DNA from: Zootoca vivipara
Taxonomy: Eukaryota
NCBI RefSeq assembly: GCF_963506605.1
Contig: NC_083292.1
Span: 25,978,001-26,042,000 of the forward strand
Direction: 5' to 3'
DNA length: 64,000 nt
In this document: in pieces, positions 32,472-64,000 of the stretch
Layout: each line of letters starts with the position of its first letter
Numbering within the stretch: position 1 is the first letter of the stretch
The notes under the pieces: generated by a model
Told to the model about the DNA's origin: nothing
Databases searched by the model: none
What the model saw: only the letters and a program-made list of their open reading frames with translations
Made by a program: the position numbers and the translations under genes

Positions 32472-32526
<55 letters not shown>

Positions 32527-43815: not shown

Positions 43816-46800
43816 GTGAGAGAGAGAGGATGCCTCTGAATATATTTTGCTTCCTGGGGTGGGGGAGCAGTGGGGGGGGGTGGCTCTTAGTCTCAGGCCC
43901 TTCTTGGGGGCTTCCTGAGGGTATCTGCTTTGCTTCAGGGTGCTAGCCACAGGGCTCTTATGAGAGTGAGTGAATGGCCCCACAGGTTTCTGAGATAAAT
44001 TCTGTGTGTAAAGTAGCAGGGCTATCAGGCCTAGTGGCTGATAGTTCTCTTTTCCTCTTGCCCTGCCAGGAAGTCCAGCATCCTGGGGCCAGACAAAAGA
44101 TTCTGGCGGGCCCACAAGCAGGCCTCCCCTCATTCATCCTCAGCCAAAAGGCCTATTGCAGGCACCCCCAAACTCGGCCCTCCAGATGTTTTTGGGACTA
44201 CAACTCCCATCATCCCTAGCTAACAGGACCAGTGGTCAGGGATTATGGGAACCGTAGTCCAAAACATCTGGAGGGCCGAGTTTGGGGGTGCCTGGCCTAT
44301 TGCCTCTCTCCTTGAAGGATTGGACAGATTCATGGAGCATAAGGCTATAGATGGCCTCTAGCCAGGAAGGCTACACTCTGCCTCCATGGTCAGAGCCATA
44401 GGAAGGAGTGCTCTTGAGCTCAGGTCCTGCTTGCCTAACCTCCCTCACAGGGTTGTTGGGAGGATAGAGTGGGGGTGGGGGGAGAACTATGTGCTCCACC
44501 TTGAGCTCCTTTGAGGAGAAGTGGGATATAAATGTATACAAATGCATAAAATAAATTACATTGCACTTTCTGATACTGTTTTTAAATGCTGTAAGCCCCT
44601 TTCAGTCCCAACTTGAGAGCAAGGCGAGATATAAACACATTAAATAACATTAGCCTCCAAGGTCTGGTGCATGTGGAGGAGGGTGTCTGCTGAAGGTCTC
44701 TTCTAAATAAGGGAGCCCCTCCCTCCTTCTGTAGCCAGCCACCCTCGAGAAAGAAGCAGAAAGGCGGGTGCACACAGCCCAAATACTGTCTCGGGGCCCC
44801 TGAGCTCTCCTCATGTGCCTTCCTTTGTTCTCTTTCTTGGCAGACAGCAGAAAGCAGTAGAGACGGAAGAGGGCACTGTGCAAATCCAGGAAGGTGAGCA
44901 CCCACCCACACCTGCCTCTCTTGCTTCCGGCCTCCCCGCCCCCACCCTGCCCCACTTCCTCCCACTCCCCAAAAGCTAAACGGTGATCTGCTAGTGGAGA
45001 TTCCCCTCCACTCCCTTCTAATCTTCTGGCACACTGCTCCGCTGGTTGTGTGGGTGGATGGAGAATGTTCCTGCCTGGGCAACGCTTAATGAGCAAATGT
45101 GTCCATCTCTCTTCCCTGGGCGGCACCCCCTTCTCTTCTTTCCTTAAGGGGCAGTGGCGACAGGTGAAGATCCCACCAGTGTGGCCATTGCTAGCATTCA
45201 ATCAGCTGCTACCTTCCCTGATCCCAACATCAAATACGTCTTCCGGACAGAAAATGGGGGCACTCAGGTAAGACACTTATCGCATTCCCCTCGTGCCGCT
45301 GGCTTTGTTTCCTTTGGGGTGGGTTGGTGGGTGTGCAATATAGTGGCTCTGTTATTCCTTGACGGTCAGAGGCAGCAGTGCCCCCACAGAAGCCACAAGA
45401 AGGGAGAATACTCTTGTGCTTGTCTCCTGCTTGCGGGTTCCTTCACAAGCATCTGGTTGGCCACTGCAAGAACAGGATCCTGGACTAGATGGGCCATTGG
45501 CCTGATCCAGTACTGTTATTCTCATGTTCTTCCCACTATCTATTCTCTCTACATCACCCCTAACTCAGCGCACACACACCCCATCTCGTTTCCCAGCATT
45601 TCTGAAAAATAGACTAAAACAGTAGGTGTGATAAAAACGGGGATGGAGCGTCTGTGCTGCCCCGCCCAGTGTGTCCAGAGACATGTGGAAGACCCCCATC
45701 TTTGCTCTGCTGAAGTGCTCCATCCTTCCACCTTCCGGAAGTCCAAGGTGAGCAAAGCATAAGGAGACTTAGCACAGGGTGCCTCCCTGTCTCTGGCATG
45801 CAGGGACTCGTACCCTCTCAGGCTGGTCCTGCCCAGCCCCTTCATTAGCTTGGCCTGTGTGTTCCCCCTTGTAGGCATCAGCCACCTCTTGTGCAAATGC
45901 AGTTATGCGGGCATCCCGGGACTGCATCCTGGAGAAAGAGGCCAAGCCAACCGGTTTGCAGGGGTCCTGCTAGCTCAGGGTTATTTCCAACAAGGCTCAG
46001 GGAAGTGATGGGGGTCGTCTTATACATGGGGGTCATCTTCCCCCATTTTCATAAATTTGAGTCCCCCAAAATAGAGGTCGTGTTATACACGGAAAAATAC
46101 AGTACATTTGTAAGATCCCAGCCCCTCCTTCAGAATGCTCAGCATGGTGTGGATGTTTCTGCTCCCCTGCACATTTGGGAAGGGCCATAGCTCAGTGGTA
46201 GAACATGTGCTTTGCATGCAGAAGGTCCCAGGTTCAATCCCTGGCTGCATCTGCAGGCAAGGTTGGGAAGGAACCTTGCCTGAAACTCTGAAGAGCTGCT
46301 GCCAGTCAGTTTAGGCAGTACAGTCGTACCTTGGTTGCCGAACGCCTTGGAACTCGTACGTTTCGGCTCCTGAACGATCGAAAACCGGTAGTGAGTGTTT
46401 TGGTTTCCAAACGGTTTTCAGAAGCTGAATGTCTGGTGCGGCTTCCGTAGCATCCGATTGGCTGCAGGACGCTCCAATCGGAAGCCAAGCCTTGGTTTTC
46501 GAACCAGTTGCTGCGATGTTTGGGCTGGAGAGTGCTTACGAAGCTCCCGAACGATCGCCCAGGAGGGGGGGAACATGCCAGTCGGGCATGTGTCTCTGCC
46601 AGGGTGCTACTCGTAAGTAGGCCTTTTCCTGACAAAACGGACTCCCAGAATGGATTCTGTTCGAGAACCAAGGTACGACTGTACTACATGGTCCAAATGG
46701 CATGACTCAGTGTAAGGCAACTTTCTATGCCCCCCCCCACACACACTTGCAAGAAAGTAGCTAGGCTAGGCTAGGTGAAAAGCACGTGCCATAGGCTCAC

Positions 46801-49800
46801 CCAGTCAGCCTCATGGTTCAACAGGACTCTGAACCTGTGTCTCCTGGCTGGAGCTGATGAGGGTTTGGAGGGGGGCAGATTGGCAAAGGCTGCTCTCGCC
46901 ACTAAGCACTGGCTCTGTTAACAATGTCCCCCCTCCCCTTTGCTCTTTTCCCCAGCTGATGTACAGGGTGATTCAGGTAGCCGAAGGGCAGCTGGATGGG
47001 CAGACGGAGGGCACCGGGGCCATCAGCGGTTATCCTGCAACACAGTCCATGACACAGGTGGGTTCTGCTGAGTCAGCGGAGGAAATGGTGACGTTGCCAA
47101 TCTGCTCTATGCAGTCATCCTTTCTGGCTGAGCTGTTAGCTCTGCTCCTCTGGCCCCAGGTGGTTTGTGGCTGGTGAAACAGGCTCCTTGAGGCTTATGG
47201 GCAGGAGGTGGATATTCTGCAGGCACATTCACCCCAATTCTGCAGCTTGAATAACTTAGGTACGGTTGCATGTAGTTGGTGCATTTGCAGTGTTCAGCAT
47301 CTGCTAGTCAGTATGAAGGGCCAAAGGGTGATTCCAGTGGGGCTTAATGCTAAGATATTGAATGGGTCATTGGCAAGAGGAGTTTTTCTTCTTACTGGGT
47401 TTTCCCTGGAAATAGTATATCTGAAATAAAATAAAGGGTGGGGATACAGGCTGGCATATTTTTGCTGTTTATTGTGTGGACTCTCAAAATCTTGCATGTG
47501 GCACCCCCAGTCCAACAGAAAGAGCCCACCTGGAAGCACCCAAAGAGTGACAAGGAATCCTTCTTAGCCCCTCCCCTTCCCTTTGGCTTTTCCATAGCTC
47601 ATAAGGACTAGAAGCTTGTTTCATAAAACCAGGCTGCTGAATATCAAATAACTGCCTCTGCCCCTCGCTTCTTGCATCTAAGGTACCTTTGAAGGTATAA
47701 GCAGCTCAATCCAAGCAGTTGTGATGCCGTTGGGGTGTTTGCGAAGGGTATCACTGGATCACGTTCCTCAGTTTTGTTGAATTAATTCAACTAAATAAGT
47801 TTCAATTGGATTTTGGAAAACAAACGTGCAATTAATTGCTACTGTTTGGAATTTTGTGTGGGTTATCTTCGCCAGTGGTTTGTCCAAACATTTGTTTGAA
47901 TGATGCTTTTATAGAGTAGGGTAGAGTGGGCCTAGGGATGAATTTGTGGAACCGGGGGGGGGGGCGGTTGCCTGAAAAGGTTTGGGAACCACTGTGCTAG
48001 ACTGAAGGTTCTAAACCCTCCTGCATTGATTTTGCACTTGTGCTTTGGGCTTCAATACAAAAGCAGTGTAGGAAGAGGATCTCAAGGGAGGAGCATCCTG
48101 AGAGAATAGCACCATTGTCTGACCCTCTGTCTTTGCCTGAGATGGATACCTGCCCAAGTATTTGTTGAGGTAGATGTATCTGAAGGAGGCTCCTCTCTCC
48201 TCCTCCTCCCAGGCTGTCATCCAGGGCGCATTCACCAGTGAAGATGCCGTCGAGACAGAAGCTGCGACCACAGAGACGCACTACACGTACTACCCTGCCA
48301 CTGCAGTGGCTGACACCAGCACGTCTGCCGGGGCAGGGACCACAGCCACAGCTGTGGTGACGACCCAGAACTCGGATGCCCTGCTGGGGCAAGCGACGCC
48401 AACTGGCACAGGTCAGTTGGGTTGGGCTACCTGCAAGACGACTGGCCTGAGGAGCTTCCCTCCGGCCTGGGCCTAGGGCCACCCCTCCCCTCCCCAGGAG
48501 CCAGCTGGCAAGTTCAACTTACTTAGCCCCTTCCCCTGGGAAATGGAGTTGCTCCCACCTCTGTGCTCGCTATGGGTTTTCCATGTCAAGATGGGGCCGT
48601 TTTGGCCATCTCAGGTTGTGCAAATGATCGGAACGATGTCGTGCATCTATTTTTATTTTTATTTTAAATATATTTTTATTGATTTTATAACAAATACAAC
48701 AACTATAAAAAACATAGATAAAAGAAAAAAGACAAAACAAAAACAAAAAATGCAAAGAAAAAAAAACATTTTCTTAACAATATAATATTCCAATATACTT
48801 TCTTACTCTGTCGACTTCCTCCTTCCCCCCCTTCCACGTTTCTATTTATATCTAGTATAGCACTCTCTACTTCTTAAATCATTGCTTCTTCTAAAATACT
48901 CATTATAAATATTATTCTACATCCGTTATAACCACGAAATTCCAGTATTTCAAAATATCATTTGGATCTAAAAATCATAATTATTTTACATTTAGTCTTA
49001 ATTCCTCCTTACTATAACTATTTGCTTCTTCAGCCTCTTTGTACTTCCACTTCCCTTATTGTCCATTATTTAATCTTATATTTCTTCTCCAAATAAATCT
49101 TAAATTTCTTCCAATCTTCTTCCACCGTCTCCTCTCCCCGATCTCGGATTCTCCCAGTCAGTTCAAACAGTTCCATAAATTCTATCAGCTTCATCTGCCA
49201 GTCTGACGATGTCGTGCATCTAAACCGGTCGTCGCAGAGCACGAGTGGTGAAGTTTTAGGAGTCTAGGTTGCACAGGTTGGACACAGATTTTGGGAAACA
49301 AGCTCCCATACCTACAGATTGGGGGAACCCAGTTTCAGATCGCACTGCAGAATGTGATGGTGCTACGCAGTCATGTTAATATCCTCACCACCACCACTTC
49401 TCCTCACTTAGAACTAGGGCAGCTTGGCCACCTGCTTGGTCATCAGTTTCATGGGAGCTCCTTTAGGGCTGTGCTGCTCTTCTCTACAACTCTGTCTTGT
49501 TTTGAATTGCACAGGGCAGTTTTTTGTCATGATGTCGCCACAGGAGGTTCTGCAAAGTGGGACACAGAGGTCCATTGCACCCAGGACTCACCCTTACTCA
49601 CCGTGAGTGCTCTCCTTCCCTGTCGCATGCCAGTCGCTAAAGTTCTCCCTTTATTCAGGGGTGGGGCACACTTTCCTTGAGTGTCCAATGGCTTCCCAGC
49701 CTGGAAGGGGAGCTGCTGAGGGTCTCCTCCTGTCTCTGGAAATCTGAATGGGAAACCCAGTGCCAAACTGTGTGCTTTTGACTCCCTCAGGAAGTCTGAA

Positions 49801-52800
49801 GCCCCACGAACAACCCGAGATGAGAAACGTCGGGCGCAGCACAATGAAGGTGAGTGGGAACTGTTTTGCCAACGAACGTGATCCTTGAATTTAGCCACAC
49901 TGTTCCACGAGGAGAGGTTGCTTGGAGTGCTGACTGCCTTGCACCCCTCTGTAGAAGGATCTTATTGCAGGGTGTACTGCAGCACTGCAATCTGTTTAGC
50001 ATCTTGAAGGAGATTGGTCCACATCCCACCGTTCTTGTATGCCGATCATTCTTCCACCTCATGCTCAATTGTTATTTTGTTTGAATTCTTAGTAGGTCTG
50101 AGGCCCTGTATGTATTGAGATAGATTTGCGCGCAACAGAAATGTTTAAGAAGAAGAAAATTCATGTGAAACCAGAGAGCATTTCAGTTCACATACTCAAA
50201 ACAAGGCAGTCCCTCCCCGCAGGCTTACAGTCTAAAAACACAAGGGAAAGGGAGCAGACTTGGTGGTGTATTCTACATGTGCCATGGCTTCCAAACTAGG
50301 CGTGTGCTTCTCCATGTGCTCTGAATCCCACCACCTTTGGTGCTGCCTTTTTCCTCCTCTTCATTTTAGAAAGTTGGGTGCTGGCAAACCTTGCCGGGTT
50401 CTTGGTTTAACACAGCAGCAATGGGCTCCCGTGGACCAGAGGATCTCCCCAGTCTGAAGTAATTTGGCGAGGGCAGCAATCGCCAAGGTTGACTGCTATG
50501 ATTTTAGTGATGAATTGCTCTTTCCTAGCTGCTGTACGTACTGCCTCTTGTAATGTTTAATTATTTCTTTTAATTGTTGACAACCCAGTTTCTTTCTCTT
50601 TTTCCTTTTGAAGTTAAAGGAGAGTCATGCTCTCTCTCCTGACCCCCATATATACTATCTTGCTCACAACCTCTTTTGCATACCCTGTTTCTCCCCCTCC
50701 TTCACCTCATCTATTATCTTGCCTAGTATGTTCTAAAAAAAGAGATTCCCTCTAAAGAAATCCTCTAAGGGTGTAAAGATGTTGCTGCATATGCCAGTAT
50801 ATGTTCACATCTCATCCTCCAGGGATTTTATTCTGAGTTCTAAAGTATTTCCAACCCTGGCTAAAATTCTGGAAAAACTAGTAAGGCCTTTTGAAGTGTT
50901 TGAGTTGTGTTCAGTTGCATGTAATAATCGTCAAGAGGTGGGACCCGGCTGGCCACCTTAAATAGAGAGTTGTGTATGTAGAATGACCGGTGGTAGGCCA
51001 GGAGGCAGGGGATCATTTTGGGCTGGCCAAAAGGCTCTTCTTGAGGAATATCGAGTGCTTTTTCACCTAGGGCATAGCTAAACTATAGAACTGACTCCCG
51101 CAGCTGGCAGTGACGGCCACCAAATTGGATTACTTTAGAAGAGGATTGGACAAATTCATGGAGGAGGAAGCTACAAATGGGTACTCAGCATGATGGTGAT
51201 GCTGGGAGGCTGTCCTGATTTCAAATACCAGTTGCTACCGGTAGAAACCACAGGAAGGGAGAGTGCTCTTTTGCTTGCAAGTTTCCCGGGGCATTTGGTT
51301 GGCCGCTGTGAGAACAGCATGCTGGACTAGGTGGGCCCTTGGCCTCATCCAGCAGGCTCTGTCTATGATGTTTGTCTTTCCATCTCTTCCAGTGGAGCGC
51401 AGGCGCAGGGACAAGATCAACAACTGGATTGTGCAGCTGTCTAAGATTATCCCTGACTGTTCCATGGAGAACACCAAATCTGGACAGGTAAGGGGGCTTG
51501 GACTGGCCTTCTGTAGGAGCAGAGACAGTCTGGGCCCAGTTACAGAAAGGCCCCAGCAGGGTGCCAGCCCTTGACTTCAGGCTCGCTCAGGGTCAGCTGC
51601 TGCATCTGTGAAGCTGCTTGCCATTCTAATTTCCACAGTGCCCTGGCTTGATTCCATCATGTTGACGGCACCAGGGCTCTCTGGGTAATCTTAAAATGGT
51701 GGGCACATCGCTGAGGGATCGAAAAGGCCAGAAGGGGCTCTGCCTGAGGGAACTGACCTGAGCTCATCACCCTCTCAAACATTCTGCCTACCAAACTTCA
51801 AAATCTTGTATCCAGAACTCTACTCTGCACATCAAGGAAATCGTTCATTTTGGCGTTTAGTAACCCGTGGTGGTAAAAGGGACGTGGGTGGCGCTGTGGG
51901 TTAAACCACAGAGCCTAGGGCTTGCCGATCAGAAGGTCGGCAGTTTGAATCCCCGCAATGGGGTGAGCTCCCGTTGTTCGGTCCCAGCTCCTGCCCACCT
52001 AGCAGTTCGAAAGCACGTCAAAATGCAAGTGGATAAATAGGTACCGCTGCAGCGGGAAGGTAAACTGCGTTTCCGTGCACTGCTCTGGTTCGCCAGAAGC
52101 GGCTCTGTCATGCTGGCCACATGACCTGGAAGCTGTACGCCGGCTCCCTCGGCCAATAACGCGAGATGAGCGCCGCAACCCCAGAGTCGGTCACGACTGG
52201 ACCTAATGGTCAGCGGTCCCTTTAACCCGTGGTGGCGTCCATATCAAGCAATCTGTTTGCATGTGCATGGATTAAAAAACATATAGGTGCAAAACAGGAG
52301 CTGTTGGGTGAAGCAGCAGCCATTAACTGCTTTGGATGCCTTGTAAAAGCAGACCTGTTTGCCCAGACATCCCCTGACCCCAGAAGATTGGACCCTGTTT
52401 GTGTGTTTCAATCCCTTTAATGCCTTTTAAAATTCCTTTTTGCAAGCTTTGCTACTGCTTGCAGTTTGTTTTGGGTTGTATTTTTTTCTGTTAATTCTGT
52501 TGCTTTTCTATTGTTCAGAACTCAAAACTTTTAAAAACATTAAGTGGTTTATAAGAGCTTTTGAATAGAATCTTTTAAAAGACGATCCCGGGATCTGTCT
52601 TGCCACCCCCATCAGGAGGAGTCCCCTGCTTCCATCTTCACCTGGTCTAGGAATTGTTTGGTTCCCTGGAAACTGTCGGGGGTTGTTGCCTTAACTCGTT
52701 GCAGCACCTGGCAACAAAAGTTGTGCTGGTTTTAACATTTCTAGGCAGGAGGAGGCAGTTTTCCAGTCTTCAGGGAAACGGCACACTGAGATGGGTGGAA

Positions 52801-54189
52801 GGGGGAGGGGGTTGAAGAGAGAAGGCAGCCATGAACTGCCAAGTGTTCCCACCTGAAGTGTCAGGGGCTGGTACTACCCTGGGGCCTAATCCCTGGGCCT
52901 GCAGCTCAATCAATCGCTTTCACTGCAGAGCAAAGGAGGCATCCTCTCCAAAGCTTGTGACTACATCCAGGAGTTGCGGCAGAGCAACATCCGTCTCTCT
53001 GAGGAGCTGCAGGGCTTGGACCAGCTACAGATGGACAATGAGGTCTTGCGGCAGCAGGTAAGGCTAGCCAGAAGGGGGGCAGGGTATGGATGTTTTTCTA
53101 CCAGAAGGGGAGAAGTAGTGGGGGGGCTCTTCCAGCAGTCTGCCTATTGCTTGCAGCGGTATGGATGAATATGTAGGAACATAGGTAGTTGCCTTGTGCG
53201 GAGAGAAACCACTGGTCTTTCTAGCTCAGTATTGTCTACACTGACTAGCAGCGATTTCTGGCAGGTGTCTCTCTCCCTGGAGATTCTACTGGGCATTGAA
53301 CTTGGGTCCTTCTCGATGCTTTCCACTGAGCTGCAGTCCTTCCCTTAGCATATAGGGACACAGGAAGCTGCCGTATACTGAGGCAAATCATTGGCCCATC
53401 TAGCTCAGTATTGCCTACACTGATTGGCAACAGCAGCTCTCAGGCGTTTGAGGCAGAGGATATTCCCAGCCCTGTCTGCAAATTAAACCTGGGGAGGAAT
53501 GGCAAACCAAGCTGATGGACTATACCAGGCACCCCCAAACTTCGGCCCTCCAGATGTTTTGGACTACAATTCCCATCTTCCCCGACCACTGGTTCTGTTA
53601 GCTAGGGATCATGGGAGTTGTAGGCCAAAACATCTGGAGGGCCAAAGTTTGGGGATGCCTGGACCATACCATAATGGCAAAACTGACTAGAAAACTCAGA
53701 AACTAAGAGGACAAAAACTCTATAAAAGAATGGAAAAAATTTATAAGCTGCTTAGGAGACCACTGTAAGCAGATGGAAACATTGCCAGGATTTTGATTTC
53801 ACTTGTAGTGTAACAATTACCATGGATAATATGGATTGATATAATAGAGTATGGAAGAATATGCAGTTTTAAATGTTCAAAATGGGACCCCATTTTGAGA
53901 GGGTGGGGGGAAGTCCCGAAATTCGGAGGAATCTCTGTATATGGATATATATTTCAATATTTATAACTTTGTATATATCTAAAACCAAATAAAAATGCTT
54001 TTAAAAAAAAGATTTCAAGTTGAACCTGGGACCTTCTGCATGCAAGGCAGGCGCTCTGCCACAGAGCTGAGGCCCTTCCCTGCTTCCTTTCTCCCCCTGC
54101 AGGTTGAAGACCTGAAAAACAAGAACCTGGTTTTGCGAGCGCAGCTGCGGCAGCACGGCGTGGAGGTCATCATCAAGGACAGCCACTGA
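43808..54189 (+). CDS. USF1: Upstream stimulatory factor 1 (bHLH-ZIP), complete CDS, 311 aa
   Basis: join(43808-43815, 44844-44893, 45149-45267, 46956-47057, 48213-48411, 49515-49602, 49791-49849, 51393-51487, 52929-53057, 54103-54189) = 936 nt in frame; MKGQQKAVETEEGTVQIQE...RDEKRRAQHNEVERRRRDKINNWIVQLSKIIPDC...SKGGILSKACDYIQELRQSN. Confidence 0.97.
44159..44294. mobile_element. 136-bp palindromic hAT MITE
   Basis: TSD gcctattg. Confidence 0.88.
44844..44893 (+). CDS. USF1: USF1 exon 3
   Basis: QQKAVETEEGTVQIQE. Confidence 0.93.
45149..45267 (+). CDS. USF1: USF1 exon 4
   Basis: AVATGEDPTSVAIASIQSAATFPDPNIKYVFRTENGGTQ. Confidence 0.95.
46182..46318 (+). mobile_element. tRNA-derived SINE head
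   Basis: A box tagctcagtgg, B box ggttcaatcc; many diverged copies (about 12815, 17250, 43040, 53300, 54015, 56170). Confidence 0.65.
46321..46681. mobile_element. Tc1/mariner (Tigger-like) MITE
   Basis: Perfect TIR cagtcgtaccttggtt / aaccaaggtacgactg; TA TSD. Confidence 0.85.
46956..47057 (+). CDS. USF1: USF1 exon 5
   Basis: LMYRVIQVAEGQLDGQTEGTGAISGYPATQSMTQ. Confidence 0.95.
48213..48411 (+). CDS. USF1: USF1 exon 6
   Basis: AVIQGAFTSEDAVETE...LLGQATPTGT. Confidence 0.95.
48650..49205 (-). mobile_element. L1/Tx1-like LINE 3' fragment
   Basis: Perfect 17-bp TSD acgatgtcgtgcatcta (48633-48649, 49206-49222); A-rich tail on minus strand. Confidence 0.8.
49515..49602 (+). CDS. USF1: USF1 exon 7 (USF-specific region)
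   Basis: QFFVMMSPQEVLQSGTQRSIAPRTHPYSP. Confidence 0.95.
49791..49849 (+). CDS. USF1: USF1 exon 8 (basic region)
   Basis: KSEAPRTTRDEKRRAQHNE. Confidence 0.95.
51393..51487 (+). CDS. USF1: USF1 exon 9 (helix 1 and loop)
   Basis: VERRRRDKINNWIVQLSKIIPDCSMENTKSGQ. Confidence 0.96.
51874..52222 (+). mobile_element. Sauria-type SINE
   Basis: Full-length-like; 13-bp TSD taacccgtggtgg. Confidence 0.87.
52929..53057 (+). CDS. USF1: USF1 exon 10 (helix 2 and zipper)
   Basis: SKGGILSKACDYIQELRQSNIRLSEELQGLDQLQMDNEVLRQQ. Confidence 0.96.
53526..53661. mobile_element. 136-bp palindromic hAT MITE
   Basis: TSD gactatac/gaccatac. Confidence 0.85.
54103..54189 (+). CDS. USF1: USF1 terminal coding exon
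   Basis: VEDLKNKNLVLRAQLRQHGVEVIIKDSH*. Confidence 0.95.
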   Translation, partial: VEDLKNKNLVLRAQLRQHGVEVIIKDSH

Positions 54190-55121
54190 TAAGCCACCAC
54201 TGACCAAGGGCCCTCCTTGCCCTCCTCCTCCTCCTCCAGCACAGCAGCCAACGGGGGTCCTGTGCCTCGCCGGTGCTTCCATGCCAGGCCCCCGTCCTTG
54301 TTGTACAGACCCAGTGAGCAGCGCTGTTGCCCGGGCCAGGGAGCTGGGCTGGGCTCAGCTCAGGACACTTGCCTCTGCCCAGTGCTCTCCTTCATGGCCC
54401 GGGACCTGGCTTGCCCCCTTGAGCTTAGACGCTGCCTCTCGACACAGTCCTCTGTCTTGATACGACCCTAATCAGTTCCAGGGTCATGACCTTTTCTCTC
54501 TTTCTTTCTCTCCTCCCTTTGAACAGCACCTCCCACCTGTGCGCTCGACACACCTCTCGCTGTGTCCGTGCATGCGATATTATGTAGACATGTTGCACGT
54601 CCCCCATTTCTCCCTCGCGCCGCTTATAGGCCCTGCCCTCCACAGCACTGCCCATCTCCGGGCACCTTACTCTTTGTGAGCGTGGAGAGCTGAGGAGCTG
54701 AGAGTCTTCCTCTCCCCCAGCCCTGCTTTGTGGCTCTCTGGCCCAGTAGGAGGAACCCTTTACACCACAGAGACAGCCTCACACACGCTTCCCCTTCAAG
54801 GCTGGCCACCTAGTTCTGCCTCTGGGCTTCCACTCAAACAGCTGCAGGTCTGATGTGGCCCTGAAAACCCTCCCGAGAGTCTGGGCTTGCAGTGAAGACA
54901 AGCCTGCCACAGCCTCCCCCTTTCTTTACTCCACACCATGGAAGGTGATTTAAAGTTGCTCTCGTGCCATGGAAGCCGTTTGCCAAGGAGGTGAGTGTGG
55001 GCCGAGAGCAGCAGTAGCTGTCCTCCCGTCTCAGGTGATTGGACAACTGGTTGGGGTGATGCTTCTCTTTTTTTTCCTCCCCCCGTTTTTTGTTTTTTTA
55101 AAAAAGTCTCTGGATTAAAAA

Positions 55122-55127
55122 AATAAA
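55122..55127 (+). terminator. Probable USF1 polyadenylation signal
   Basis: AATAAA after a U-rich tract, followed by GU-rich gtgttctgtgttct about 20 nt downstream. Confidence 0.7.
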
Positions 55128-55169
55128 GTAATGGAAAAGCAAGTGGGTGTTCTGTGTTCTGGCTTGCGG

Positions 55170-55711
55170 ATGAGTGTCAAGTCTCCTCTTGCAGCGGTGG
55201 AGAGGACATTGAGTTTGGTCCTGCCAAAATAGGGGGCAGTACTGGTGAAGCAGCTGGAGAGCACTGGCCTTGAACTGGTGGGTTGGGGTATTGAAGAAGG
55301 ATATTGACAAGTTGGCACATTTGCGGAAGAGAGTGACCAAACTAATCGGGGTAACCAAGCCTTGTGAAGAATGGTCAAGGGAGTTCGGGGATGTTTTGCC
55401 TGGAGAAGATGAGGCCGAGAAGTGATGTGATAGCCATCTTCAAACATCTGAAGGGCTACCAATTGGAATATGGAGGAAGTTTGTGTTCTGCTGCCACTGA
55501 GGACAGGACCCAAACCAGCTGATTCAAATGATAAGAAAGATGATTCCGACTAAATATCAGGAGGAGCTTTCTGACAAAAAGAGCCGCTTGGCAGTGGAAC
55601 AAAGTCCTTCAAAAGGTGGTGGGCTCTCCTACCCTGGATGTTGTTTAACAGTGGTTGGATGGCGATCTGTCTTTAACTGCGGTTCCTGCATTGCAAGGGG
55701 TTGGACTAGAC
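55170..55711 (+). mobile_element. Degraded CR1 LINE 3' fragment
   Basis: ggatattgacaagttg...tagccatcttcaaacatctgaaggg...gggttggactaga. Confidence 0.65.
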
Positions 55712-55847
55712 CAGTGTTTCCCAACCTTGGGTCCCCAGCTGCTTTTGGACTACAGTTCCCATCATCCTTGACCGCTGGTCTTGCTAGCTAGGGATGATGG
55801 GAGTTGTAGTCCAAAAACTGCTGGAGGGCCGAGGTTGGGAAACACTG
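55712..55847. mobile_element. 136-bp hAT MITE (variant TIR) inserted in a CR1 tail
   Basis: TSD gactagac; TIR cagtgtttccc. Confidence 0.85.
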
Positions 55848-56636
55848 GACTAGACAACCCTTGGTTGTATGACCCACTACTAGGTCATGGTCTGAACCAA
55901 AGTGGTTGCAACAGTGTTGTTGTTATAACACCATACACCAGTGTGGTGTAGTGGTTAGAGTGTTGGCCTAGAACCTTGGGAGGCCAGGGTTCAAATTCCC
56001 ACTTGCCCATGAAACTTTCTGGGCCACCTTGAGCCTATACTAACCTACCTCACAGGGTTCTTGTGGGGATCAAATGAGGAGAGGGGGAGAGCCATGTATA
56101 CCACCTTAAACTCCTTAGAAAAAGGTGTGATATAAATGCAGTAAACAAATACATTTCCCTGCCTTAGGTGGAGAGTCCAGACATTGATTCTGGTTCCTTC
56201 TGCATGCACAGCATGTGTCCTTCCACACAGCCTTTCTCTACACCAGGACACTAGCTAAGGACGTGGAAATTTCACACAACCCTTGCACCAAATAGTTGGA
56301 GATCAGAGCACAAAAAGTACTTGTGTGTGTGTTTGTGTCTTACGCTAATTATATTCTCACCCAACATATTTTGGCTTGCATAAAATGGGAGAGCCGTTAC
56401 CTAGCGCTTCTAGGTTAGATACACTAACCCAGCTGGTGCCATTTCCCTGAGCCAAATGGTCAAAACAAAGTGCAAGGTCTGGTGGATGGTGATTGTTATT
56501 AAAGCGCAGAATTCACACACAGCCCCAAACTTGTCAGATCTCTCCCCAGGGCAATTTCTAATCCCCACCCCTAAAGTTCTGTCCCTTTGCTCAGGTGGAG
56601 TTTATCCATGCAGAGGGTCATCCATTGTGGGTGTTC

Positions 56637-56943
56637 CTAGACCAGGAATCCTCTGGGTTTTGGGAAAGGACCTGGCTGTTTCCCCTCCTCACTTCCGGAC
56701 GAAGACCCCTGCTCCTCAGAGAGGCTGTTGCTTCTCCATCTCCCCCAGGGTTGCCGTGGGCCACCTGGAAGTGTGGCCTGGCTGAGGTTCCCCTGCTCGG
56801 GCCTCCATTCACGATGAGCATAGGTGGTGTTGGGAGTGGAGCTGGTGAAGATCCAGAGGGGCTTGGTGACGGGGCTGGCCGCAGGGTTGGCTCCAGAAGG
56901 ATTCTTTACAACGATCAGGCGCCCCAATGTGAAGCTGTCTGTC
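56637..56943 (-). CDS. IGSF11-like terminal (cytoplasmic) exon
   Basis: ccgcag acceptor, phase 2 fits the TM exon; TDSFTLGRLIV...PKPRGFLV*. Confidence 0.78.
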
Positions 56944-59900
56944 CTGCGGAGCAACAGTCAAGGTTAGCCACATTTGAAACACTAGGGCTCAGTCTAGGGC
57001 AGGCTTCCTCAAACTCAGCCCTCCAGATGTTTTTGGCCTACAACTCCCATGATCCCTAGCTAGCAGGACCAGTGGTCAAGGATGATGGGAATTGTAGTCT
57101 CAAAACATCTTGAGGGCCGAGTTTGAGGAAGCCTGGTCTAGGGGGTCCCCCTAAAACTGTTTCACAAGCTTTATTTAGGTGGTCTGAAGGATGGCAACAG
57201 CAGTGGCTGTTCCATAGTTCTTGGAACCTAGTGGTTTAGAAGATGAGCAGGGTGAGATGCAGGAAGAGGCACTTCAAAAGGAGTGGAGAGGATTATCAGC
57301 TTGGAGGTGAGTGGTGTAGGCTTGAGGTTCTGGGGGAGAGGCACTTCTATAGCTCCCAGAATTTATTTATTTTTAGGGGTGGAGGGGCCTTGATGGTTTA
57401 AAGTGTTATTGTAGTGCTCTAAATGTATGCTACAAATGCGCCTTGTGTATAATACCCCAAATGGTAGGTGACCGAGGACGGCCTCGGTCCAGTATACCTG
57501 AAGGAGCGTCTCCACCCGTGTTGCTCAGGCCGGACACTGAGGTCCAGCGCGAGGGCCTTCTGGCAGCTCCCTCTCTGCGAGCAGCCAAGTTACAGGGAAC
57601 CAGGCAGAGGGCCTTCTCGGTAGTGGCACCCGCCCTGTGGAACGCCCTCCCACCAGATGTCAAAGAGAAAAACAACTACCAGACTTTTAGAGGACATCTG
57701 AAGGCAGCCCTGTTTAGGGAAGCTTTTAATGTTTAAGAAATTATTGTATTTTAATACTTCTGTTGGAAGCCGCCCAGCGTGGCTGGGGAAACCCAGCCAG
57801 ATGGGTGGGGTATAAATAAACTATTATTATTATTATTATTTATTCCTGGTTGCAATTCAGAGGTCTGCGCTGATCCTAGTCCAAGAAGCATGCTAGCCCA
57901 CATTGGCCCTTGCATTGATTTACCTGTGCTTTTTGCGTGCATTGTCCTGTTCCAGCTCTCTCTGCTTCTCCACGCTCTGATGGTGCAGCCACAACACCAG
58001 TGCAAACAGCGTCATCAGCACCAGGCCCATCGTGAACACGAGGCTGATCCCCACTGCGAGGGAGGTGGTGCCATGTGAGGCTGGAATACAGCAAAGGAAA
58101 CAGGATGAGAGAATGGCCACTCACAGCGCCCATCAGCCCCGTTATCCCTGCTGGCTGAGACTGATGGGAAATGTAGTCGAGAGCATTTGGAGGGCACCAC
58201 GTTGGGGAAGGCTGGCTGAAGACCGCCGTCTTGCCCCTAGCTACAGCCAAGCCTAGTAGGGTTTCTAGATCTCAAGGAGGACAGAGTTAACAGTTGTACG
58301 GAAGAGGTAACTGGGAATGGTCCTAAACTCTGGGAGAGTGGAACTTCCCCACCTTATTGCAGGAAAAAGATGGGGGGCCTTTGGATAGCGGCAACAGAGC
58401 TTCAACTGGGAGCCTGCCTGATCCATAGCTCTGTCTGCAATCTTAACTCCACTTACCTGTGCAGAGCTAACACCCGAGATGCATATATTTTAGGACCTAT
58501 TCCAAACGGCTTTTAAGAATTGTGTTTAAATTGTCGTCACCCACCCCGGGTTGAAGGGCAGGTAATAAATTGTAATAACAACACCAATAATAATTGATAA
58601 TATAGGCAAGTACATCGGGGGGGGGGGAGTCCTAGGCATATTCAAAGATGGACGCCTTGGTGCAATGAAGCCATGCCATGTGAATCTCCTGGATCTGCAG
58701 CTGAGGGCACCAGCTTAGACCCCGGCCCTTTCCAGACCCTGGCGATACTCACTGACGTGAACACGCAGCTCCAGGACGCAGGAGGTGGAGCCCAGCATGT
58801 TGGAGGCCGTGCAGCGGTAAAGGCCCGAGGCCTGCGTCGTCAGGTTTTGCAAGGTCAGGAGGGCACGCTTGCCATCTGCCCAACGAGAGGGCCGGAGCCG
58901 GAGGAGAAAGGGGAAATTAGCAATGGGAAGTAACTCCTCCCCAACCCCAACCCCAATCACAATCAGCATAGGACCCTCATCTGTATTACATGAATGTGAG
59001 CAGGAGTTGACCCGCCACTGCGTCCCCTTAGGAGAATTCTTCAAAGCTTGGCTGAGATGAATGGGTGTCAAAAGATGCATTCTTGTTCCCGGAATAATGA
59101 GGCAGTGGGAAGTTTGTGTGTATGTGTGTGTTAAGAACAAGGGAGGATCCGTAGCCTAGATTGGATAAACCCTTGGATTCAGCACTTTGGGACGTTTCGT
59201 CTTCCAAATCAGGCTTCCTTAGCTTGCTGCCCTCCTGATGCTTTTATAGTCCACAATTCCCATCAACCCCCGGCTGGCATGGTCGGGGCTGGGGGTGTAT
59301 TGGAGCTGCAGTACAAAATCCCTGTGTGGTGCTGCTCTAAATTGATTTTTAATAGAGTTAGACAACTAATAATCATCACAACAACAAAAATATTGTTGCT
59401 TAGAAGTTAATAGCTGCTGATCCACCAATACGAGATCCCGTTTTTTAAGTGTATTTGGGCTGGCCAGTTTTACCATATCGAAGTTTTCCCAACTCACCTG
59501 GCTGGATGCCACATCATCCTCGAACGGAGAACAATATCTTCCCCATTCCTTATTAAAATTTTGGTCTTCCTGATTGTTATTGGCCCAGAGATGGGAAAGA
59601 AGATAGAGTCCCTACCCGAGAAGAATGGCAGATTAACTTGACGGATTATGCTGAAATGGCTAAAATGGCTGGAAGAATCAGAAATCGGGGAGACCAAAAT
59701 TTTGATAAAGACCGGGGGAAAGTTATATTTTATCTTACAAACCATTGCAAACAGCTAAAATATTGTAGTTTAATGGTGAATTTTGGACACAATGGAGAGG
59801 TAAACGATTTGGATTATTATAAAAGATGCAGGAGGAAATTATTGACAATAGGACCCACAAAGGCGAGGAAGGAGATTCTTTGGAATCATGTTTTTATGTT

Positions 59901-61597
59901 GTATGTTATGATGATGATGATGATGATGGTGATGATGATAATAATAATAATAATAATAATACTTTTATTATTTATACCCCATCCATCTGGCTGGGTTTCC
60001 CCAGCCACTCTGGGCGGCTTCCAGCAGAAATATTAAAATACAATAATTTATTAAACATTAAAGCTTCCCTAAATAGGGGTGCTCTGTTGGGTATGTGATT
60101 GTAAAATTTTAATCTGAAAAACCAAATAAATAAATTTTAAAAAGAAAAGAATGGGGAACAATAGGCCAAGAAAAAGGGCCTGCGTTTGAGAGAGCTGTGG
60201 GCAAGAGTTTGGGACTGATGCTGGAAGCTGGAGACTCAGAAATATGTGCTCTGTGCTGTACCTGGGGGCTCCCCTGGAAACCTAATGGGGAAGCTATATT
60301 TGTTGGGGCGTTAATGCTGCGAGTCCCTCCCTCCTATGCTGGGGTTTGCATTTTTGTGAGAATTAAACCATGCACCTTAAAGATACCACCATCTCTCTTC
60401 ATTCCAAGGAAACTGAACCTGGGTATGCACAGGAACCCCTGGAGAATCTTGCAGCCTGGCCGTTAGGGTGCATGCAACAATATATAACATCCCTTCGCAA
60501 ACCTTAAATCAAATAAAAGTCCTCCTATCATTTTGCTGCTTGCCCTACTCGTACTGGGACCAGCAGCTGTTGAACACCGCCTCTCTCGGCTTCTTGTTAC
60601 CTTCAAAACTCATCATCAGAGGTTGCGCATCTGGTGGGATCTTCTCCCAGGTGAACGTGGGGGTGGGCATCCCTTCATCCACGGTGCACGAGAACTGGAG
60701 GCTTCCGCCCTCCTCGCTGTCGCCCTCGCTGGAGCACATGGGACGAGAGGGAGGCACTGGGGGAGGGACACAGAATAAGAGGAAGTCCAGTTCAGACTCA
60801 CAAGCCCCATTTCTTCAGAGAGGACGATTCTCGCTTTTAAAATACTCAAATATTTTAAAGATGACAATAATGAAATCGTTCCAAATGAAGATTATGTAGA
60901 GGCCTGGCAATATTTAGAATTTTTTTTTAAAAAAAAGGTAATGAAAACCAAATGTTTGATATGCTAACTAGAATAAAAGCCCAAAGTAATATTACAGATG
61001 GCGCACATGCCGCTTGCTTTTGTTTTGAAATTCGTTATCTAAACATTAACCAACCATTAGCGTTTTTCAATTGATTTGTTCGTTTTGATAACTTCCAGGA
61101 AAATGCTGGTTTGATCAGGAGCTGTAGTATCCTATTTTTCCTAACCAGCCTGTGATTTGGGAGTGAGGAGTTGCACAAATTCTAACAATAGCAAGTAAAT
61201 TAAATAATAAATTGATATTAACAGTTTATACCTCAGGTATCCAATAAGATTTTTCTTTGAATTTGGTTGGTTGGGAAAAAAATTATCCTGTTATTTCTTT
61301 AATTTTGTCTAAGATTATGTTCCAGGAAACTTGTTAACGCTAAGACGAGACCAAAGTATATAAATTAACATCTGCATGAGTAGAATTACATCTCTGGCAT
61401 TTACTACTGGCATTGGGATAGATCTTGTGAAATCTGCAAGGGCTGAGACACCGCAGAAATATATTATATTATGAAGATACCTCACTTGCAAATGACTACA
61501 GATTAGTCATGGGAGTGAAGTCAGAAAGCAAGGAGACCCACGGTAGATGGAGCCTAAGCAAATAATAGATGGAGCCAACTGAGGCCACATTCATGAC

Positions 61598-61659
<62 letters not shown>

Positions 61660-63037
61660 TTATTATTTATACCCTGCCCATCTGGCCGGGTTCCCCCAGC
61701 CACTCTGGGCGGCTTCCAACAAAATACTAAAATACAGAAATCCATCAAACATTAAAAGCTTCCCTAAACAGGGCTGCCTTAAGATGCCTTCTAAAGGTCT
61801 GGTAATTGTTATTCTCTTTGACCTCTGGTGGGGGCATTCCACAGAGTGGGCGCCACTACCGAGAAGGCCCTCTGCCTGGTTCCCTGTAACTTGGCTTCTC
61901 GTAGCGAGGGAACCGCCAGAAGGCCCTCGGCGCTGGATCTCAGTGTCCGGGCAGAACGATTGGGGGGAGGAGACGCTCCTTCAGTTATACTGGACCGAGG
62001 CCATACTGGACATACATTTAAAGCATTGTGATACCACTTTAAACAGTCATATCTTCCTCCAGTGAATCTTGGGAGCTATAGTATGTTGAGAGCAGATCCC
62101 TATTCCCCTTATGGTGCTACAGTTCCCAGAGTTCCCTGTGAGGAGGGGTTGATTGTTAAACCATTCTGGGAGCTGTAGCTCTGGGAGGGGAATTGCGATT
62201 GCCTAACAGCTCTTAGCACCTTTAGCAAACTATACTTCCTAGGATTCTTTGGGAGAAGAACGTGGTCTAATTTGAGTTTTATCTACAAGGGCAACACTGA
62301 AACAAAAGAGGAGGAAGCAGGTGCCCAGAGGCACCCACTGGGCTGCCTGTGAGAAAGAGGGCAGGTGGGTTTGGAGGAGCAGAGGTTGGTGAGTTTCCCT
62401 AATGGACCAGCCTCCACTGAATCCGTCCCTTGGGTACGTTCTTCAACAGCCAAGCCCGAGTATCTTCAGGGACCAGTTAATTTATAACTTTCTCCATTTC
62501 TTTTTAGAGGGAGGTATTCTAGCATCACGATTAGCTACCCAGGTATAAATTTCACCAAAAGGTTTTATTGAAGAGGGTCAGGTGATAAATCATTAGATTT
62601 AGATTAACTGGCATCACGGCAGAACCGGCAGAACACGGTTCCTCCCCACATCTGAGATGTTTGGCTCCTAGTACGTTTCCGAGCACAATTCAAAGTGTCG
62701 GTGCTGACCTTTAAAGCCCTAAAGGGCCTCGGCCCAGTATACCCAAAGGAGCATCTCCACCCACATCGCTGGACACTGAGGTCCAGCTCCGAGGGCCTTC
62801 TGGTGGTTCCCTCACTGCGAGAAGTGAAGTTACAGGGAACCAGGCAGAGGGCCTTCTCGGTAGTGGCACCTGCCCTGTGGAATGCCCTCCTATCTGATTA
62901 CAAGGAAATAAACAACTACTATCTGACTTTTAGAAGACACCTGAAGGGGAAATTTTTAGTGTCTGATGTTTTACCATTTTCTATGTGCTGTAAGTCGCCC
63001 AGAGTGGCTGGGGAAACCCAGCTAGATGGGCGGGGTA

Positions 63038-63086
<49 letters not shown>

Positions 63087-63354
63087 GAGACAAGCCTAGC
63101 CTTGTGCTTGTGAGGGAGCTGAGAATGAAGGATGTGGGAGCAGCCATACCAAAAACAGTGAGCTGGATGACCCCGATGTTGGGCGTGGCAGCGTCTGGAG
63201 GGTTCATCACGCTGCACTGGTACCTGCCACTGTCCGAGCTCCGTGTGTCGTTCAAGATGATGGTGGCACTCTTGGTGGGCGAGAAAGCAAAGCCCACCCG
63301 GCCTGTGTACTGGGAGATGCTCTCCACCACCTCACCTTGCTCATAGGCAAGGAC
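56637..63354 (-). CDS. IGSF11-like CTX-family Ig-superfamily membrane protein (V-C2-TM-tail); 5' exons lie beyond the window end
   Basis: complement(join(63150-63354, 60601-60756, 58753-58875, 57924-58080, 56637-56943)), all phases compatible; DSGRYQC and SGLYRC Ig motifs, extra C2 cysteine pair, TM segment LAVGISLVFTMGLVLMTLFALVLWL, ends GFLV*. Confidence 0.9.
57000..57135. mobile_element. 136-bp palindromic hAT MITE
   Basis: TSD gtctaggg. Confidence 0.88.
57478..57843 (+). mobile_element. L2-type LINE 3' end
   Basis: GTRQRAFSVVAPALWNALPPDVKE..FRGHLKAALF, typical of the L2 ORF2 end; (TTA)n tail. Confidence 0.8.
57924..58080 (-). CDS. IGSF11-like transmembrane exon
   Basis: SHGTTSLAVGISLVFTMGLVLMTLFALVLWLHHQSVEKQRELEQDNARKKHR. 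Confidence 0.88.
58753..58875 (-). CDS. IGSF11-like exon, second half of C2 domain
   Basis: DGKRALLTLQNLTTQASGLYRCTASNMLGSTSCVLELRVHV. Confidence 0.92.
59575..60135 (+). mobile_element. L1/Tx1-like 3' fragment containing an inserted L2 tail (about 59940-60072)
   Basis: DYAEMAKMAGRIRNRGDQNF matches the 15.4-16.0 kb family. Confidence 0.6.
60601..60756 (-). CDS. IGSF11-like exon, first half of C2 domain
   Basis: VPPSRPMCSSEGDSEEGGSLQFSCTVDEGMPTPTFTWEKIPPDAQPLMMSFE. Confidence 0.92.
61598..62000 (-). mobile_element. L2-type LINE 3' end with (TTA)n tail
   Basis: Same family, reverse orientation. Confidence 0.75.
62660..63086 (+). mobile_element. L2-type LINE 3' end with (TTA)n tail
   Basis: VLTFKALKGLGPVY...RAFSVVAPALWNAL. 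Confidence 0.8.
63150..63354 (-). CDS. IGSF11-like exon, second half of V domain
   Basis: VLAYEQGEVVESISQYTGRVGFAFSPTKSATIILNDTRSSDSGRYQCSVMNPPDAATPNIGVIQLTVF. Confidence 0.92.
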
Positions 63355-64000
63355 CTGCAGAGCAGAGGAATGGTCAAGTGAGATGACGGTCCAAGGATGC
63401 TCAAAGCGAGAGATGACAGTGAAGTTAAGAGGACACTACATTGAGGCAGTTTCAAGGTGGGCAGGTGAGTGAAAGTCTAGACTCTCTGTTTGGTTGTGCT
63501 GGGCCTTGGCTTTCTTGGGCACCTGTTACAGGACTTAAACTACCTTTTGTTTAGGATGTTGCTTGTCAATGGATTGCCTGGGTCAGGAATATCCCAGACC
63601 CTGAGATTTTATGGCCCAAACCTGAGAGCTAGAGTGGCCCCTGGTGATTCTGCACTCCCTCCCACCAGTGAACCCTGGAGACGGAGGTTAATTGGGAGAG
63701 GCGAGGAGGGAAGACCGTGGAGAGCCCGTGCTATAATTTTCAGCTGGCTCCTACCAAGCTGAAGCTTGCAAACTGCATGCATAATAAAAGTTTTTTTTTT
63801 AAAGGCACTGTTGCCCACCTGGAGATTCAAGCCGTCCCACCTGAAGGGGGCTAGGCAAACCTGGAGATTTCAGGTCAGGTCTGGCAACCCTACCAAGGCT
63901 GATTGGCAGATCTTTCATCAAAGGGGACCTAATGGTTAGGAAACAGTTGGCAATTTCTCTGGAGAGTGATTTGAATGTCTCAGGTTGGAAGAGGCAGTTT

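Follow-up and report, generated by a model that had tools for sequence, protein, structure and literature searches.

Given that an apparently intact immunoglobulin-superfamily receptor gene lies next to USF1 in Zootoca vivipara, we asked whether it is IGSF11 in a new position, another junctional receptor, or a paralogue in its own right. The window, by which we mean the whole 64,000-nucleotide stretch analysed, carries the last five coding exons of the gene annotated as "IGSF11-like" or zgc:165604, encoding a type I receptor of the CAR subgroup that is likely an old sister of IGSF11 and whose range extends from shark to lizard, with no copy found in mammals or neognath birds. Automatic annotation in RefSeq and UniProt already lists both the gene model and its family, and the protein belongs to the CAR subgroup as an IGSF11-related member; it is no new kind of molecule.

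Exon structure and transcript models

Reading the window on the minus strand from 63354 to 56637 yielded five coding exons with AG...GT at all internal borders and intron phases of 1, 1, 1, and 2. Their translations are exact substrings of XP_034954143.1 (RefSeq "IGSF11-like"; residues 80-147, 149-199, 201-240, 242-292, and 294-394), the database protein used as reference for our comparisons. The four split codons, the only pieces joined across exons, give the V148, D200, T241, and R293 of the reference and, together with the exons, account for residues 80-394. These results bear out the first-pass annotation, which had described five in-phase exons of an intact gene.

Exon 1 (63150-63354) codes for the latter half of a V-set Ig domain (residues 80-147 and the first base of codon V148; Pfam V-set positions 58-108) between an acceptor ending in ctgcag and a donor G/GTATGG, and in a search of 1.84 billion proteins it was 91% identical to its Gekko orthologue. 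The coding exons for residues 1-79, and with them the first V exon, lie beyond the end of the window. Exon 2 (60601-60756) carries the first half of a C2-set domain (residues 148-200; Pfam Ig_3) with an extra cysteine, C155, and the canonical C171; it has AG/GT borders, both in phase 1, and matches XP_034954143.1 exactly over 149-199. Exon 3 (58753-58875) supplies the second half of that domain (residues 200-241; Pfam I-set positions 54-90) with C221 and the extra C232. The Pfam assignments agree with the earlier reading of half a V domain followed by a C2 domain divided over two exons. Exon 4 (57924-58080; residues 241-293) encodes the stalk, a single membrane helix at about residues 248-272, and a juxtamembrane stretch, and ends in phase 2. 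The last exon (56637-56943; residues 293-394) encodes the cytoplasmic tail, which ends GFLV ahead of a TAG stop at 56639-56637. All five exons lie on the minus strand.

A second RefSeq model, XP_060125820.1, leaves the last exon through an internal donor (A/GTGAGG at 56693/56692) and continues into an alternative 3' coding exon on the same strand (55177-55220; acceptor ttttggcag). Residues 12-362 of this model equal residues 26-376 of XP_034954143.1, and the last 18 residues of the GFLV model are swapped out, with loss of the GFLV end. Its own last 12 residues map to 55215-55180 and are followed by TGA, and the corresponding ORF is also visible in the window. In the 2.4 kb that follow the receptor stop, the minus strand has neither AATAAA nor ATTAAA. 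Of the words in 56600-60800, a stretch of which the exons make up 0.18, a fraction of 0.16-0.21 is present in three small sequencing runs presumed to be RNA, and this word share gives only a hint of receptor gene expression.

Domain architecture of the encoded receptor

Across the whole protein, Pfam places a V-set domain at residues 37-146 and an Ig_3/I-set domain at 156-238, and in the AlphaFold2 model both Ig domains are predicted with confidence (pLDDT 80-95), followed by a membrane helix at 243-286 and a disordered tail (pLDDT under 50). Across 15 orthologues six cysteines do not vary: the canonical pairs C51/C126 and C171/C221, and the extra pair C155/C232, which had already been picked out in the motifs RPMC and STSC and which would form a putative second disulfide of the C2 domain. 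Conservation among the orthologues is also high in the membrane segment. A cytoplasmic tail follows as first described, although it measures ~122 residues and not about 128; the tail exon has no Pfam or PDB match. Tail conservation is not uniform, in that a C-terminal G-F-L-V is common to squamates, a turtle, frogs, and coelacanth, while in teleosts the tail of the orthologue is short and ends R-S-F-V.

When solved structures were searched by sequence, the best match was CAR D1-D2, which aligns colinearly with residues 35-240 (E 7e-24), and JAM-A was absent among the 60 PDB matches listed. A fold search likewise returned the mouse CAR ectodomain first (3jz7; E 3.7e-17, TM 0.76 on target), with JAM-A (1f97) as third-best match. 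Pfam, the fold, and the extra Cys pair uphold the earlier assignment to the CTX/CAR group. Exon-by-exon Pfam and PDB searches gave nothing beyond Ig domains and a weak, colinear match to CAR, and the ESM Atlas gave generic CTX/JAM clusters only. As a separate observation, exon-wise summed scores put the multi-Ig proteins pIgR, DCC, and titin above the true relatives.

Phylogenetic separation from IGSF11

We built a maximum-likelihood tree of 51 rows and 353 columns under LG+C20, with a sturgeon ESAM-like protein, which we take to be ESAM from its tail motifs, as the single outgroup and root; CXADR, CLMP, VSIG1/2/8, GPA33, and the JAMs lie outside the sample. The IGSF11-like proteins formed one clade (99/99) and true IGSF11 another (100/99), the internal order matching the species tree, with support of 100/100, 98/97, and 98/97 for the squamate, sauropsid, and tetrapod nodes of the IGSF11-like clade. 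Nesting within true IGSF11 had been named at the outset as the outcome that would speak against a separate paralogue, and the IGSF11 clade instead excludes the lizard protein. Both genes are present in Pogona, where they are 43% identical, and in nine fish species. Together, the separate clades and the co-occurrence of both genes within these species mark the lizard gene as a distinct old paralogue and not a translocated IGSF11, in line with the original claim.

Each clade contains ray-finned and lobe-finned lineages, and the IGSF11-like clade also includes one shark on a long branch. Read from the tree, the duplication predates the bony vertebrate split and probably predates the jawed vertebrate radiation. 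The single "lamprey" entry in the tree looks like fish contamination, and the cyclostome data are unusable.

Identity to IGSF11 is 46% over the ectodomain, as against 33% to the sturgeon ESAM-like protein, which makes IGSF11 the nearest paralogue found, as had been suspected; these pairwise scores and the one root suggest that the two clades are sisters. Beyond residue 238, in the membrane segment and tail, BLASTP against IGSF11 found no similarity. The path from Amia to Astyanax, summed by hand from the newick, is 0.79 changes per column in the IGSF11-like clade and 0.21 in IGSF11, making the former ~3.7 times faster.

Genomic neighbourhood and mode of origin

The neighbourhood was read in one species only, Zootoca vivipara. 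Coding exons on the plus strand at 44815-54189, recognised as ORF pieces with a Pfam HLH match on 51263-51574, belong to a gene that we take to be USF1 from its protein; it is convergent with the minus-strand receptor gene, the two stop codons lying 2.4 kb apart. Upstream of USF1 on the plus strand is an ARHGAP30-like RhoGAP gene (23636-35362; Pfam RhoGAP at 23636-23971) with a long 774-aa exon at 33038-35362, which its position beside USF1 suggests is ARHGAP30. These are the neighbours that the first-pass annotation had named.

For human, we assume a map of NECTIN4-ARHGAP30-USF1-F11R (1q23), NECTIN3-ARHGAP31-IGSF11 (3q13), and NECTIN1-ARHGAP32-ESAM (11q23-24), which we take to be paralogous blocks. 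The age of the duplication and the place of the gene in the USF1-ARHGAP30 block fit an origin by whole-genome duplication. The chief competitor, which we consider unlikely but deserving of weight, is that IGSF11 was copied locally or segmentally in an early vertebrate and the copy landed beside USF1, in which case the gene would not be a 2R duplicate. The tree and the searches reveal how old the duplication is and not its mode, and the synteny comes from the single species; on the other hand, whole-genome duplication would predict a copy at just this place, in the ARHGAP30-USF1 block, if the NECTIN-ARHGAP blocks of the assumed human map are paralogous.

Distribution among vertebrates

Protein database searches recovered orthologues from squamates, turtles, alligator, ostrich, frogs, a salamander, coelacanth, Amia, sturgeon, teleosts, and a shark, with no mammal or neognath bird among those found. 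The proposal that the gene was kept in reptiles stands in this respect, but the gene is not specific to them, its range extending from shark to lizard. Names for the group are automatic only: "immunoglobulin superfamily member 11-like" in RefSeq and, for fish, "zgc:165604" in UniProt/Ensembl, with some members (Varanus, Chelonia, Xenopus laevis, and many teleosts) named plainly "IGSF11" in RefSeq/UniProt. The library searched held no literature on zgc:165604 or the IGSF11-like gene that we could find, nor on CTX/JAM paralogons or ARHGAP30-33 duplication; among the matches inspected, those to "member 11-like" concerned SLC2A11-like and that to "165604" was a PMC id.

It is improbable that mammals have an orthologue after all, whether diverged, renamed (for example as VSIG8, on the same human chromosome arm), or present without annotation in monotremes or marsupials. 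Such a gene might be passed over, given that VSIG8 and other CTX members lie outside the tree, that the word-based searches cover proteins of 0.55-1.75x query length sharing exact words, and that the exon 1 search used 50%-identity representatives, behind which cluster members may be hidden. Nevertheless, no mammalian member appeared among the 48 matches of one word-based search or the 120 listed of another, and in the index-free exon 1 search the whole-exon mammal-type matches were all of true IGSF11 type, at 43% identity. Among the matches up to about 700 aa that were inspected in the best 150 of that search, IGSF11, CXADR-like, and ESAM-like proteins were present and no VSIG8-like protein was; fishes and reptiles, moreover, presumably have VSIG8 genes of their own, which counts against a renamed VSIG8. 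A mammalian member was missing from the results of all three protein searches.

Integrity and identity of the lizard gene

We also evaluated whether the lizard copy might be decaying or neofunctionalising, and so no longer a working adhesion receptor, which appears very unlikely. Several features would be consistent with loss of function: the juxtamembrane S-Y-N-E-I-R, conserved in other orthologues, is replaced in lacertids, the second RefSeq model is without the PDZ-type end, no canonical polyadenylation signal follows the stop, and the clade evolves at the raised rate given above. However, the frame is open through all five receptor exons, every splice site is intact, and the lizard protein keeps all invariant Cys, Trp, and Gly positions. 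The Zootoca, Podarcis, and Lacerta proteins are, in addition, ~96-97% identical, with the altered motif conserved among them.

That the gene is instead a relocated IGSF11 orthologue or F11R (JAM-A) is hardly credible and both were rejected: against the plain "IGSF11" labels on some members stand well-supported separate clades, both genes within single species, and no similarity past the ectodomain, and against the JAM-A-like F-L-V end stand CAR as the best PDB match by sequence and fold (the tree itself containing no JAM), an extra C2 Cys pair of the CTX/CAR kind, and convergence with USF1 where human F11R, which we take to adjoin USF1, is presumably co-oriented with it.

Proposed function and significance

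In our preferred reading of an old IGSF11 paralogue, the product is a type I membrane protein in which an N-terminal V-set domain is followed by a C2-set domain carrying the extra Cys pair, a single membrane helix, and a disordered ~122-residue tail with a GFLV end. By analogy with CAR, IGSF11, and ESAM, it may support cell-cell adhesion through the V domain, and its C-terminus may dock PDZ scaffold proteins at junctions. Because the F-L-V end differs from the S-x-V of those three proteins, the scaffold partners may differ as well.

More tentatively, and as a possibility that we would not yet favour as a whole, we propose that the gene is a fifth CAR-subgroup member, a 2R ohnologue of IGSF11 from a NECTIN-ARHGAP-USF paralogon, retained between sharks and lizards but lost in mammals and, independently, in neognath birds. 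Exchange of the S-x-V PDZ ligand for a JAM-A-type F-L-V would have directed it to a different junctional scaffold, and it may share the IGSF11 role in gap-junction-dependent cell patterning, for example in the arrangement of chromatophores in ectotherms. Taken as a whole, the interpretation offered in the first-pass annotation is partly supported.

The existence of this gene has several implications. The CAR subgroup has been treated as four proteins (PMC10957231), to which fishes, amphibians, and reptiles would add a fifth, IGSF11-related member. In zebrafish, zgc:165604 may buffer the loss-of-function phenotypes of igsf11 or be confused with them, and the many database entries that label the gene plainly "IGSF11" are mislabelled. 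Reconstructions of vertebrate genome duplication can draw on a further member, retained or lost, of the NECTIN-ARHGAP-USF-CTX/JAM paralogon; medical relevance is limited by the absence of the gene from mammals, none having been found in our searches.

Comparison with known systems

The CAR subgroup of the CTX family consists of CAR, CLMP, IGSF11, and ESAM, each with an N-terminal V-type and a membrane-proximal C2-type Ig domain; IGSF11 and the CAR subgroup act in cell adhesion, bind PDZ proteins, and organise junctions and connexins (PMC10957231). The lizard protein has the same V-type and C2-type domains by Pfam, AlphaFold2, and its top fold match to CAR, and has the second C2 Cys pair at C155/C232. 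Its Ig domains are spread over two exons with phase-1 introns, as the E1/E2, E2/E3, and E3/E4 borders are all in phase 1, the C2 domain is split at D200, and exon 1 starts at residue 80 in the middle of the V domain.

F11R (JAM-A) is also a two-Ig junctional adhesion protein, but its orientation relative to USF1 differs from that of the lizard gene. In JAMs the C2 domain is without the extra Cys pair and the tail is ~40 residues long, whereas the lizard protein has the pair and a tail of ~122 residues, and CAR outranks JAM-A in both sequence and fold, again with no JAM in the tree. The JAM-A C-terminus is F-L-V, of the hydrophobic class-II kind, while IGSF11, ESAM, and CAR end S-x-V.

CXADR (CAR) is the best solved-structure relative by sequence and fold, and in both proteins the ectodomain consists of two domains, with D2 bearing a second disulfide that in the lizard protein is predicted; however, identity is only about 26-28%, the tail is different, and no virus-receptor role is implied. 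ESAM, also of the CAR subgroup, has a long cytoplasmic tail with a PDZ-type end and falls outside both IGSF11 clades.

IGSF11 (BT-IgSF, VSIG3), the nearest paralogue found, shares the V and C2 plan, the extra Cys pair, the exon split, and many motifs. The lizard gene nonetheless sits beside USF1/ARHGAP30 where IGSF11 is near ARHGAP31, its membrane segment and tail are unrelated, and it ends F-L-V where IGSF11 ends S-L-V. It is not an IGSF11 orthologue by any of three measures, as it lies outside the IGSF11 clade, its type coexists with true IGSF11 in Pogona and nine fishes, and its tail differs. The coelacanth IGSF11-like member keeps an IGSF11/CAR-like tail end (M-G-A-M-P-V-M-V...A-G-F-L-V). 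With the RefSeq IGSF11-like/zgc:165604 group, finally, the comparison reveals no difference: the match to XP_034954143.1 is exact, the protein falls inside the 99/99 clade, and the lizard gene is the same gene.

Gene model and protein architecture

Reading the minus strand of 56000-64000, we found the last five coding exons of an IGSF11-like receptor gene: the second half of a V-set domain (E1, 63354-63150), the first and second halves of a C2/I-set domain (E2, 60756-60601; E3, 58875-58753) and a hydrophobic membrane segment (E4, 58080-57924), each with AG/GT borders, followed by a tail exon that ends in TAG (E5, 56943-56637). The introns between them have phases 1, 1, 1 and 2, so the five blocks are mutually in phase. 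When exons were searched singly, the V-set half, both C2/I-set halves and the membrane segment were detected, and no family match was found for the tail exon. All five translations are exact substrings of the 394-aa Zootoca vivipara RefSeq protein XP_034954143.1 (P0220; residues 80-147, 149-199, 201-240, 242-292 and 294-394), and the codons split across exon ends supply the residues between these matches, V148, D200, T241 and R293. The five-exon in-phase model proposed in the first-pass annotation is therefore identical to an existing RefSeq model; the coding exons for residues 1-79 lie past the end of the window.

Pfam analysis of the whole protein placed a V-set domain at 37-146 and an Ig_3/I-set domain at 156-238. 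An AlphaFold2 model, resting on an alignment of 15 orthologues, predicted two Ig domains, mostly at pLDDT 80-95, then a helix (243-286) spanning the membrane segment (about 248-272) and a disordered tail. Six cysteines are invariant across the orthologue alignment: C51/C126 in the V domain, C171/C221 in the C2 domain and C155/C232, which bears out the extra C2 pair claimed earlier from sequence. The same alignment revealed strong conservation of the membrane segment, a tail stretch K-P-L-W-x-F...T-Y-A-H-R plus a Ser/Glu cluster common to sauropsids, and a G-F-L-V C-terminus in tetrapods and coelacanth.

The introns also carry an interspersed repeat of ~350 bases ending in an (ATT)n run, with copies at 57440-57830 (+), 61650-62040 (-), 62660-63030 (+) and about 59950-60080. 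With a mean column identity of 80% among three copies, it is probably a squamate SINE, and its ORF-like stretches account for several spurious entries in the ORF list.

An old paralogue distinct from IGSF11

Scored alone against 1.84 billion representative proteins (a library collapsed at 50% identity clusters), E1 best matched a Gekko protein of 399 aa (91% identity across the whole exon), with 58-72% identity to frog, coelacanth, turtle and ostrich proteins versus 43-52% to true IGSF11 proteins. Cluster look-ups showed that the Gekko, frog, coelacanth, turtle and ostrich group is named "immunoglobulin superfamily member 11-like"; lacertid members were also recovered. We defined the group by a Gekko word search (48 matches, limited to proteins 0.55-1.75x the query length with exact words in common), a 15-orthologue profile (120 of 130 matches listed) and the E1 scan. 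Its members come from squamates, turtles, alligator, ostrich, frogs, a salamander and coelacanth, from Amia, sturgeon and many teleosts (UniProt name zgc:165604), and from the shark Heptranchias. Among the group members listed in the word, profile and E1 searches none came from a mammal or from a neognath bird, and the mammal-type sequences in the E1 scan belonged with true IGSF11.

A maximum-likelihood tree of 51 proteins (353 columns, IQ-TREE, LG+C20+F+G4, 1000 ultrafast bootstraps and SH-aLRT), rooted on one sturgeon ESAM-like protein, placed 35/35 IGSF11-like rows in one clade (support 99/99) and 15/15 true IGSF11 rows in another (100/99). Branching inside the IGSF11-like clade matches the species tree, with support for ray-finned fishes (100/100), tetrapods (98/97), sauropsids (98/97), squamates (100/100) and the Zootoca-Podarcis pair (100/100). 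Both clades contain one gene from each of Amia, Engraulis, Clupea, Megalops, Scleropages, Esox, Gasterosteus, Astyanax and Silurus, and likewise from the squamate Pogona (P0187 and P0046, 43% identity in the overlap). In pairwise alignment the Zootoca protein shares 46% ectodomain identity with a tetrapod IGSF11, and its membrane segment and tail show no similarity to that protein; identity to the sturgeon ESAM-like protein is 33%.

Given separate supported clades and both genes within single species, we rejected the possibility that the receptor gene is IGSF11 itself. The USF1-side gene is therefore distinct from IGSF11, and the duplication is older than the ray-finned/lobe-finned fish split; the shark row, on a long branch, suggests a still older date. 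Between Amia and Astyanax, branch lengths add up to 0.79 for the IGSF11-like copy and 0.21 for IGSF11, so the former evolves ~3.7x faster. The first-pass proposal of a candidate ohnologue missing from the mammalian locus is supported in part, namely as a distinct old paralogue with no mammalian member among the matches listed.

Several proteins warrant separate comment. The sole "lamprey" member (P0385/P0418, Lampetra planeri, 23-kb contig) nests in teleosts beside Gasterosteus (100/98, 78% identity) and is most likely fish contamination of the assembly, not a cyclostome gene. The sturgeon ESAM-like P0146 (Acipenser sinensis) has two copies of the latter half of the V domain and the hamster CXADR-like P0222/P0120 (Cricetulus) three, which look like artefacts of assembly or gene modelling or like exons copied in tandem.

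Genomic neighbourhood

USF1 exons, recognized by ORFs and an HLH domain, run on the plus strand from about 44815 to a stop at 54189, and an ARHGAP30-like gene with a RhoGAP domain lies upstream in the same region (23636-35362). The receptor gene and USF1 are on opposite strands and convergent, with stop codons 2.4 kb apart. In human, ARHGAP30, USF1, TSTD1 and F11R share one orientation, and no such receptor gene is known to be annotated between them; human IGSF11 is near ARHGAP31 (3q13) and ESAM near ARHGAP32 (11q24). The receptor's position beside USF1/ARHGAP30 in Zootoca fits the ohnologue idea, and a literature search found no paper on an ARHGAP/USF/IGSF11 paralogon.

Positions 11295-11437, which precede the exon with the RhoGAP domain at 23636, are 143 consecutive N, an assembly gap or a mask. 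In the ESM Atlas, 50 chordate two-Ig proteins form a cluster (rank 16) with the automatic name "Thiosulfate sulfurtransferase like domain containing 1", which hints that a TSTD1-adjacent Ig receptor (the IGSF11-like gene or F11R) has been merged or misnamed in some annotations.

Lacertid changes and the 3' end

Geckos, turtles, ostrich, a salamander and coelacanth all keep a juxtamembrane S-Y-N-E-I-R, the counterpart in non-lacertid orthologues of the N-E-I-R/K-E-D motif that IGSF11 and ESAM carry. It is replaced in Zootoca, Podarcis and Lacerta by a basic, same-length A-R-K-K-H-R (residues about 281-293, 57924-57970 on the minus strand). By eye, no frameshift explaining the replacement was seen in the other two frames. 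Another RefSeq model of the gene, XP_060125820.1 (P0219), splices from a donor A|GTGAGG inside the last exon (56691-56693) to a small 3' exon at 55177-55220 (-) and loses the GFLV end. Neither AATAAA nor ATTAAA occurs on the minus strand across 54190-56640, the 2.4 kb from the receptor stop to the end of USF1. These three features leave a small chance that the lizard gene is in functional decay; against this, the gene retains an intact reading frame and all invariant residues, and mutual identity of the lacertid proteins is about 96-97%. On the USF1 (+) strand, two polyadenylation-like signals (55114 and 55122) closely precede the small exon.

Comparison with known receptors

RefSeq, UniProt and Ensembl already list this exact gene model and the orthologue group, with automatic names that fail to tell the gene from IGSF11 and mislabel some members. 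Many clade members are called plainly "immunoglobulin superfamily member 11" in Varanus, Chelonia, Xenopus laevis and most teleosts and "VSIG2-like" in Pogona and Pyxicephalus, and the true IGSF11 of Pogona carries the name "IGSF11-like". Our literature search found no publication treating the protein as a distinct CAR-subgroup member; it is an uncharacterised member of a known receptor kind.

The CAR ectodomain was the top solved-structure sequence match of the Zootoca protein (E 7e-24, colinear with residues 35-240), and JAM-A was not found among the 60 matches listed. Mouse CAR (3jz7) was likewise the top fold match (E 3.7e-17, TM 0.76 on target), outranking JAM-A, butyrophilins and nectins. 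For the CAR subgroup, with IGSF11 and ESAM among its members, roles in cell-cell contact, V-domain trans binding and PDZ scaffold recruitment are described (PMC10957231). By analogy, the IGSF11-like protein would be located at cell-cell contacts, with a V domain that may bind in trans and a C-terminus predicted to recruit PDZ scaffolds. Its F-L-V end has a hydrophobic residue at position -2, as does the JAM-A C-terminus, whereas the IGSF11 C-terminus is S-L-V, as in P0077, a difference that points to putative PDZ partners other than those of IGSF11.
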